The translations under genes were made by a program, and so were the position numbers. The notes beneath the pieces are model-generated. The model was not told the DNA's origin. It saw only the letters and a list, made by a program, of their open reading frames with translations, and did not search any database. DNA of 64,000 nt from Haliotis rubra (Eukaryota): the NCBI RefSeq assembly GCF_003918875.1, contig NW_025767083.1, positions 930,001 to 994,000 of the forward strand. Reading direction: 5' to 3'. This document shows positions 55,628 to 58,600 of this stretch, one piece after another (within the stretch, counting starts at the first letter, position 1; each line of letters begins with the position of its first letter).

Positions 55628-58600
55628 ATGAGACTGTTACTGCTACTGGTGCTGCTGGCGAATGGGCACGCCGAATCAGAGGTTAAGATAACTGGACATT
55701 GGGAAGGAGGGTTTAATGGTCAGTTTTGTATCCCTGTCACGGAAGACCTGCACGGATGGTCAGCCCATGTCATCTTTGACCAGTCAATCAAGTCACTTGA
55801 TGTACGTATTATCAATTTACACCATAAACAAGGCGCATTCAACGTCTAATATACACTGACCAGCTATTATTGTGTTCCACAAGTACGGGCGCAAAACATG
55901 TTGGTGCTATTGATTACTGTGGTGACTTTAGGGTGAAATAGTCATGTGGATATGATTAGAAGCGTCTAGGTACCTAGAGGAAATATGGTATTTTGGACAG
56001 TAGCGTTTCAAGTAAAAATGCACAGGCTTGGACCCATGCTTGTAGTAAGAGACGGTTAACAGGATCGGGACACCGTGCTCGCTGGATGTGTGTCATCGTA
56101 CCCCAGTTGTGGTGATCGAAGTCAGCCACTGGATCGTCTGGTCCTGATGAAATTATTTTCAGACAGATTAGTTGTGATATAAACTACTAAAACTATAAAC
56201 TATAAAAAACATTAATACCTATAATAACATGTCAAGGTCACGTCGGGGTGACATTTTGCTATGTTGATATCCTACCCACAATGATTATCCGGACTAGCGA
56301 TGCTATATATATATATCTGAAGGTGCAACAAGCTGCTGAAATTGTGGAGACCAGAAACAACAACACTGAGTTCATCATGCACAACAAAGACTGGAACAAA
56401 GAAGAACATGTTGGCTCCCAGATCTGTATCAACCTTCTGGGAAAAACGGATGGCAATATTATCCCTTCCGCCACAGTCTACATCGCCGGTATGGACGGTC
56501 CTACTGATCAGCCGCCTACGGCTGGACCACAAAACTCCCTACTTCCAGGAAGTAGTGGGCAGACACCCGGCATCGGTGCAACGTCCGGCGTCGGTGCCAC
56601 GTCAGCTCCTTTTGTGACATCAGGTATCAAACAATGTCTCCCGAAGTTCAGGGAAATAATCAGTCTTCAATATCTGCCTCCATCTATATGTAGCTGTTGT
56701 CGCGTAGAGTGAGTGAGTGAGTGAGATTACGTTTACGCCGCTTTTAGCAATGTTTTAGCAATATCACGGCAGGGGACACCAGAAATGGGCTTCATTGGTG
56801 TCGTGTAGCTTAACCTGAAGTAAGACTTGTAGTTCAGATCCATTGACAGAGGAGGTTGACATACCAGCAAGTCACAACCAGCCACCCAATCCACAGTATC
56901 CGAATTAAAATGTCTCTTATGAAATAACCATTTCATAACTTTGATAGGATTTGTGGCGTTTAACTATGTTATTTCCATACTATGCTAACACAGAATAGCA
57001 GTCGTTATAATTATGTTCTGACATGTGTGAGACTTTGAACATTGTCAAGAAAATATATCTTTCAAAATACATGCATGCTGTTATAAGGCACCGGTATTGG
57101 TGGCGGTGAGGAAGTTATCACCAACAAGATGCAGATATACAACGACTGGGGTAACAGATTCGAAGCCGAGTTTAGTTTTCCTGTCCACCAGAGGATAGAG
57201 GGGTGGGAAGTAGCCATCAACTTTTCAGAGCCTGTGGACAAACTGGATGTAAGTTTGTGGATACAATAACCGTATAGAGTTTCGTAGTGTAACAACATGT
57301 GTATGGGTTCTCTTTCATTGTAAATTTCTACCCACGATGTAACATGAAGATGCATGTTCTCCCCAACTGTCTGTTATAATCATTCTTCATGGGGATTATA
57401 TTATTGAAAGATTAAGTAGTGATAATGATATCAAAAGAATGATTGAGTAGCGATGATGATGATGATGATGATGATGATGATGATGATGATGACTTTATTG
57501 GGTGAAAGTCAATGTTATAGCCAACGTATTTCTTTTAACTCATGTGTATGATATACAGATGTGGGTAGCCGATGTATACAAAAAGTCTGCCGATGGTAAA
57601 ACCTGGGTGGTCATCAACAAGCAGGATCATGTCTTCTTTGACAAAGGGGACACCATCAAACTCCGCTTCTTCGGCAACACACAGGCGTCGTCCGCCCCAT
57701 CTGCTGTTGCTACACTCACCAACCTCGGCCACGACGACAATGGATTCCCTAATGTCAAAAACAGCAAGTGCCTTCTCACATAACCCATGAATGTTTAAGA
57801 AGGGAGGCATGTTTATAAGTGAACCTATATGACAATCCAGCAATAGTGCCAAGGAAGTAAATATAAAGAAGTAAGAATAGGCAAATCTCAAACAAATATG
57901 TCAGTTATGCAAATTATTATTTAATTGCAGGTGATCTACAGATTCCTGTTTTCACAAGTAAACACATGTTTAACAGCTTACCTATCCTATAAACAGCCGG
58001 AGGCACCAAGTACAACTACGACGAGGTCCTCTACAAGTCCATTCTCTTCTATGACGCTCAGAGATCGGGCAAACTGCCAGCAAACAACCCCATCCCCTGG
58101 AGAGGAGATTCCGCCCTAGGAGACAAGGGAGATAATGGGGAGGACCTCACTGGTGGATGGTATGACGGTACGTAGTTCTGTTGTCACTTTACAATCCATG
58201 TGTCTCTTTCTATCAAGTCGAATTCACATCCAGGTTATCTTGTCGTTTAGGAGGTATCTCCACTGAACTGTACATCAAAGGCGTGCAATTTGTCAGTATC
58301 TTATAAATAAGGCCATCAGATGACGTCAACGATTGTTGAAGGGAGCGTCGCTGAGATGTTGTCAAGTAAATTGCGTCCCTAAACATGTGATATCAACACC
58401 ATCATGCTCTGAGCTGGTGACAACCTCAAATGTGTCAAGGGAAAGGGGGAAGGAATGGATGTTTGGTCTTGTCCTGCTACTGATTGTTGAATTTTAACTA
58501 AGCAGAAGTGTTACGGTTGGTGAATCTGTCTATGTCTTCCTAGCTGGTGACCACGTCAAGTTCAACTTCCCCATGTCGTGGTCCACCACCATCCTCACCT

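Follow-up and report, generated by a model that had tools for sequence, protein, structure and literature searches.

The Arg-to-Gly change in CBM2b switches a CBM2 module from xylan to cellulose binding; xylan binding further requires the second Trp of CBM2b, and the residues Q288 and N292 contact the xylan. GH9 cellulases with CBM2 modules are known from molluscs, where the modules have been treated as one cellulose-binding kind, while bacterial GH9 enzymes carry GH9-adjacent accessory modules, namely CBM3c and the N-terminal Ig-like module. Mechanistic background on the Arg switch of CBM2b is reportedly given by Simpson et al. 2000 (J Biol Chem 275:41137). That study is cited in PMC3576085. 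Among abalone GH9 enzymes, HdEG66 of Haliotis discus hannai has been characterized (PMC4123733).

Here we analyzed a 64,000-nucleotide stretch of Haliotis rubra DNA (the window), in which positions 57088–57763 are two exons encoding M2, the second CBM2-fold module of gene E. M2 resembles CBM2b-1 of Cellulomonas fimi xylanase D (Xyn11A; PDB 1XBD/2XBD, Arg-to-Gly variant 1E5B/1E5C). Both belong to the CBM2 fold family and have a Trp followed by Arg at +3 in the same columns (W-S-D-R-F in CBM2b-1, W-G-N-R-F in M2); a Trp is absent from the W72 column, and in genes E and F the second Trp of M2 falls on the W291 column. However, M2 is of independent origin in our tree, lacks both the 8-residue loop deletion and the terminal Cys pair, has Val where CBM2b has N292, immediately after the second Trp, is attached to GH9 rather than to a xylanase, and does not conserve the second Trp among its paralogues. 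With CBM2a of C. fimi Cex/Xyn10A (1EXG) and other cellulose-type CBM2a modules, M2 shares the fold family, a similar length, profile alignment over the whole module, and the conserved buried G-W and F at column 15; in those modules W+3 is Gly and the three surface aromatics are coplanar, whereas M2 has Arg and, in place of the third aromatic, Asp. The abalone's own M1-type modules (those of genes A, B and D and the first module of gene E, E-M1) resemble M2 in being encoded by two exons with a phase-0 intron in the same column, in belonging to the animal clade and in lying N-terminal to GH9. Their W-x-G-G-F motif, internal Cys pair, third-position aromatic and long flexible linker are all missing from M2. 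By analogy, M2 may also be likened to bacterial CBM3c and Ig-like modules as a beta-sandwich on a short tether to GH9 with no crystalline-cellulose face, although these are of other fold families and contact of M2 with the catalytic domain is not indicated here.

The abalone has two old, structurally distinct CBM2 kinds on GH9, of which the GH9-adjacent kind has fixed, under strong selection, the substitution for which a bacterial Arg-to-Gly variant has been solved (1E5B/1E5C). Should M2 bind a ligand other than cellulose, the abalone would offer an animal case of convergent evolution of CBM specificity and of dual targeting of an algal cell wall. A failure of M2 to bind any glycan would suggest that animals have a counterpart to the bacterial GH9-adjacent accessory modules.

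Structure of gene E

The predicted product of gene E is a secreted abalone (H. rubra) endoglucanase with the putative layout signal peptide, CBM2 module M1, long flexible linker, CBM2 module M2, short tether, and GH9 domain (Table 1). The linker in exon 2 is rich in Pro, Gly, Ser, and Thr and spans ~50 residues. Further GH9 exons extend to about 61840, and the catalytic domain looks intact, as these exons encode D-A-G-D (split by a splice junction) and N-E-V-A.

Table 1 Coordinates of the exons of gene E around M2, in positions of the window.
Feature	Positions	Strand	Content and borders
Gene E exon 1	55628..55801	+	Signal peptide and M1 first half (W-E-G-G-F); phase-0 end after ..SLD
Gene E exon 2	56323..56623	+	M1 second half (N-K-D-W-N, with Cys) and linker; phase-1 end
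Gene E exon 3	57088..57248	+	Linker end and M2 first half, N-D-W-G-N-R-F-E-A
M2 internal intron	57249..57558	+	Phase 0, GT-AG
Gene E exon 4	57559..57763	+	M2 second half, opens with MWVAD; no Cys; short tether
Gene E exon 5, first GH9 exon	57997..58168	+	GH9 start

M1 and M2 are each split right after ..LD by a phase-0 GT-AG intron (55801/56323 and 57248/57559), in agreement with an earlier sequence-only reading of the window, which had described both as a two-exon unit with the same intron. The column of the intron is identical in M1, M2, and every other abalone CBM2 module examined. The start and end which that reading had assigned to M2 are the exact outer ends of exons 3 and 4. Exon 3 is bordered by an acceptor AG at 57086–57087 and a phase-0 donor GT at 57249. 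The end of exon 4 works only with a GC-AG intron (57764–57996), whose donor GCAAGT at 57764 gives a phase-1 join to the GH9 acceptor at 57996/57997; a nearby GT at 57768 is in the wrong phase for this acceptor. Open frames and splice sites of M2 are intact. The two-exon cassette of M2 has phase-1 introns on both sides (56623/57088 and 57763/57997), and its skipping, from exon 2 to exon 5, would preserve the frame. In single-CBM genes the linker exon is joined to GH9 in the same phase as exon 2 would be to exon 5, and together with the phase-1-flanked cassette this is consistent with exon shuffling. A search for RNA evidence found no RNA runs; the only sequencing runs that contain the stretch are DNA contigs, 95–99% identical to the window and silent on splicing.

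Motif residues of M2 and of the other modules in the window

Direct reading of exon 3 places the first Trp of M2 (TGG) at 57147–57149 and the Arg (AGA) at 57156–57158, exactly as had been stated for the motif NDWGNRF. The other four modules of the window were said to have W-x-G-G-F, and they do: the motif is W-N-G-G-F in genes A, B, and D (W codons at 2670, 18075, and 51295, minus strand) and W-E-G-G-F in E-M1 (W codon at 55700). All four also possess the third aromatic (N-K-x-W-N) and an internal Cys pair (..FCIP.., ..ICIN..). At the corresponding positions M2 has Asp (GAT, 57625–57627) and Ser and Lys, so that both losses ascribed to it, of the third Trp and of the Cys pair, are real. The second Trp of M2 (TGG, 57562–57564) lies within the MWVAD that starts exon 4. 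M2 had been said to keep this residue; the Trp is indeed present, but it is not a general feature of the window's modules, being shared with A and B and replaced by Gly in D and by Gln in E-M1.

Homology of M2 to bacterial CBM2

Profile comparisons identify M2 as a CBM2 homologue, the family to which it had been assigned by eye. As a reference, we built an HMM from 28 C. fimi CBM2 modules, taken from a PF00553 scan of the C. fimi genome, which had been reached from a back-translated stretch of Cex (N-Q-W-N-T-G-F) via Cellulomonas loci. Spliced M2 scored 24.5 bits against this HMM over positions 5–93 of 101, and the M1-type abalone modules scored 24.6–38 bits; a profile–profile comparison of M2 with the C. 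fimi modules (hhalign) gave 89.7% and an E value of 1.9e-6. In the PDB, the profile of the first M2 exon (exon a) matched 1exg/6qfs/6f7e, its Trp aligning with N-Q-W-N-T-G-F of Cex, and that of the second (exon b) matched 2rtt/6qfs/1exg, i.e., the two exon halves hit CBM2 in the correct order. Exon a alone gave only chance matches in a phmmer search of the PDB, and Pfam returned no CBM_2 match for any of the four single CBM exons even at E 10. A six-frame scan of the genome with PF00553 yielded weak exon-level matches only (17–22 bits, gathering cut-off 24 bits), none of them in gene E. The exon-b profile also matched the N-terminus of galectin-1 weakly, over one short stretch at the C-terminus of M2-like modules (A-P-x-A-x-x-x-x-N-L-G-x-D), which we take to be probably chance.

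On the C. fimi profile, W, R, W, and D of M2 occupy columns 11, 14, 48, and 66, which correspond to W17/W259, G20/R262, W54/W291, and W72, respectively. The Arg of M2 thus falls on the column of R262 in CBM2b-1 of xylanase D, where cellulose-type modules have Gly, and its equation with the C. fimi CBM2b Arg is upheld. Column 14 is Arg in three C. fimi modules (L126–L128) and in M2 of genes E and F and of the paralogues on contig C1069 and at low coordinates of contig C2193 (C2193-low); it is Gly in the cellulose-type and M1 modules. Wherever a C. fimi module aligns at W+3 the residue is Gly, save for the three with Arg, all of which are on xylanases. Two of these are the modules of xylanase D and match PDB 1xbd/2xbd (E 4e-43), from which 1e5b/1e5c differ only by Arg to Gly at W+3; the third is on a GH10 xylanase. 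A further 44 actinobacterial loci all have Gly at W+3 but were picked with a Gly-containing pattern and are not counted as evidence.

Other parts of the CBM2b signature that had been attributed to M2 fared unevenly. In genes E and F, the Arg at Trp+3, the two Trp, and the missing third Trp are all in place, but among the W-G-N-R-F paralogues the second Trp is confined to these two genes, and the loop is kept: the ~8-residue deletion of the W72 loop in CBM2b is absent from M2, which is full length there on the C. fimi profile, while L127 and L128 show an 8-column gap. The loop sequence of M2, I-N-x-x-D-x-x-F-[FY]-x-K-G, is itself conserved. The terminal Cys pair that forms the N-/C-terminal disulfide of bacterial CBM2 was not found in the abalone modules; M1-type modules carry an internal pair instead, and M2 lacks both. 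The Arg-type module of the GH10 xylanase (L126; C. fimi G001:C144:26035-26307) reads W-N-D-R-F, lacks W72, and has almost no loop deletion, and is the closest bacterial analogue to M2 in length.

Paralogues and selection

We searched the abalone's own genome with the two M2 exons as queries. Gene F, just beyond the window, has an M2 83–88% identical to that of gene E; identity is about 60% for two genes on contig C1069 and about 57% for copies at low coordinates of C2193 and on C899. Every one of these genes has an M1-type module upstream, a linker-preceded M2, and N-D-W-G-N-R-F-E-A, which is therefore unchanged across four diverged paralogue groups, all of them two-CBM genes. At nine residues, it is the longest invariant stretch of the module (41 of 99 columns are invariant), and five of its codons show synonymous differences. 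Between genes E and F, dN/dS of M2 is 0.08 at a dS of 1.15, and the other measurable pairs give 0.19–0.25. Because of these values, 0.08–0.25 overall and a dS of 1.15 for E and F, M2 is judged to be old and under strong purifying selection. Conservation does not extend to the second Trp: of the W-G-N-R-F paralogues, E and F alone have Trp at column 48, where the C1069 genes have Ser and those of C2193-low have Gln, and the pattern of two Trp and no third (W11, W48, D66) was found in E and F.

Several copies with protein-identical M2 exons occur on the G000 contigs C683 and C1069. C683 has three exon-b copies, one of which is accompanied by no more than a partial exon a (97%), and C1069 has one copy, followed on the contig by gene F and another two genes with two CBMs each. 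Haplotigs or very recent tandem duplication could explain these copies.

Phylogeny and the M2-like clade

The tree splits animal from bacterial modules with support of 100/99 and unites the M2-like modules with the same values; the bacterial Arg-type modules form a separate clade (98/94). Because all abalone modules are set apart from the bacterial ones (100/99), the tree indicates that the Arg of M2 arose independently of that of bacterial CBM2b, in line with the convergence that had been suggested from the sequence; common descent of M2 with bacterial CBM2b was not recovered in the tree. An origin by duplication of the two-exon unit, also suggested, agrees with the unit and phase-0 intron that M2 has in common with M1, but the duplication is ancient and not a recent event within gene E. 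By this evidence, M2 was not copied recently from M1 but belongs to an older, distinct animal CBM2 subclade.

Members of the M2-like clade are GH9-adjacent, lack the Cys pair of M1 (some of the more distant ones have another pair), and are followed by a tether of ~15 residues with a conserved ..NLG-D... At column 14 the M2-like modules have R, K, or N and never Gly, the residue of all M1-type modules. Within the clade, the modules of the two-CBM genes have fixed N-D-W-G-N-R-F-E-A, and in some relatives with a single M2-like module even the first Trp is gone (contig C380, near 23 kb and 59 kb). Given these C380 relatives, the M2-like clade may not need to bind glycan at all. The contig (C380 of G000) carries a cluster of GH9 genes at about 20–112 kb (L005, L012, L023–L027, L032, L131), in which an M2-like module directly after the signal peptide is the only CBM and the first-Trp motif varies between W-D-N-N-F, no Trp with Lys at +3, and none.

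Essentially no M2 relatives in other species were found in the protein collections and metagenomes searched. A phmmer search with M2 exon b against 1.84 billion cluster representatives gave five weak matches; the two of relevance are a Tara fragment (P0002) and a metagenome host contig (P0005/L010). Word-index protein searches with exon b and P0002, whose length window omits full-length proteins, gave nothing new, and scans of JGI metagenomes with the exon-b and exon-a profiles yielded no confirmed relatives. The L010 contig (L010:2871-3005 and L010:4137-4337; JGI metagenome 3300006080) is from an animal host and encodes a signal peptide and an M2-like module with W-D-D-N-F, which has the intron at the same position and is the only CBM of a GH9 gene. 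As L010 is an animal contig, the M2-like type exists outside this genome.

Possible function of M2

The best explanation, in which we place about even confidence, is that M2 is a GH9-proximal module handling a single non-crystalline chain. From the Arg at column 14 and the Asp at the third aromatic position, we infer that M2 would have no planar three-aromatic face for crystalline cellulose; the Arg side chain would stop the first Trp from lying flat, as in CBM2b, and M2 would bind one non-crystalline glycan chain near the catalytic cleft. M1, on its long linker, would meanwhile anchor the enzyme to crystalline cellulose. Candidate chains are xylan, amorphous cellulose, and mixed-linkage beta-glucan, and the chance that xylan in particular is bound seems small. 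Counted against single-chain binding are the Ser or Gln in place of the second Trp in two of the four W-G-N-R-F paralogue groups, the undeleted loop, the Val at the N292 position, and the silence of Pfam on single exons.

A serious rival, possible rather than probable, is that M2 is mainly structural or accessory and packs on or stabilizes GH9 in the manner of the bacterial Ig-like and CBM3c modules, in which case the conserved Trp-Arg block would belong to an interface or to the fold itself and not to a glycan site. Without exception, M2-like modules immediately precede GH9, separated from it by a short conserved tether, as opposed to the ~50 residues of the M1 linker; the Cys pair is lost; and relatives have lost at least one surface aromatic, including the first Trp. 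However, the longest invariant block of M2 is the very stretch that forms the ligand face in CBM2.

Alternatively, M2 may be xylan-specific in the way of C. fimi CBM2b-1, the Arg twisting two Trp, and would direct a cellulase to xylan-containing algal walls. In its favor, M2 of genes E and F combines both Trp with the Arg at +3 and has no third aromatic; three of the three Arg-type C. fimi CBM2 modules are on xylanases; and, with several GH10 xylanase genes in its genome, the abalone has xylan in its digestive repertoire. Yet the other W-G-N-R-F paralogues do not keep the second Trp, the W72 loop is not deleted, and Val aligns with N292, which contacts xylan in CBM2b. Moreover, the catalytic partner of M2 is a GH9, and no M2-type exon was detected on the five other abalone contigs that carry GH10 genes. 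We therefore regard this specificity as unlikely, and are similarly doubtful that an animal lineage independently re-invented the Gly-to-Arg switch of specificity itself, which would make M2 a module for a non-cellulose glycan (xylan or another algal matrix glycan) working together with a cellulose-type CBM2 on one GH9 enzyme. That M2 is a decaying duplicate or a non-CBM2 module with a chance W-x-x-R-F is very improbable: the silence of Pfam CBM_2 on single exons and the near lack of relatives in the large phmmer search would fit it, but it is contradicted by the full-length profile matches, dN/dS of 0.08–0.25, a motif invariant in four old paralogue groups, and intact open frames and splice sites.

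Variants and repeats in the window

DNA runs X1 and X2, from the same or a close organism (95–99% identical to the window), have T>G at 57638, which turns a Phe of the conserved F-F in the M2 loop into Cys. Their differences at 57113 and 57570 are silent, and no change affects the Trp or Arg codons of M2. A (GAT)n microsatellite lies inside the M2 intron at ~57455–57492, where the contigs of both runs appear to be cut. The intronic stretches 56733–56901 and 58761–58929 reach a word depth of more than 1 million in X1 and X2, with many contig joints between them; they are copies of a very abundant repeat. At the other end of the window, downstream of the CBM exons of gene A, positions 71–1255 of the minus strand hold a 395-residue open frame with the look of a reverse transcriptase/endonuclease (LINE-like).
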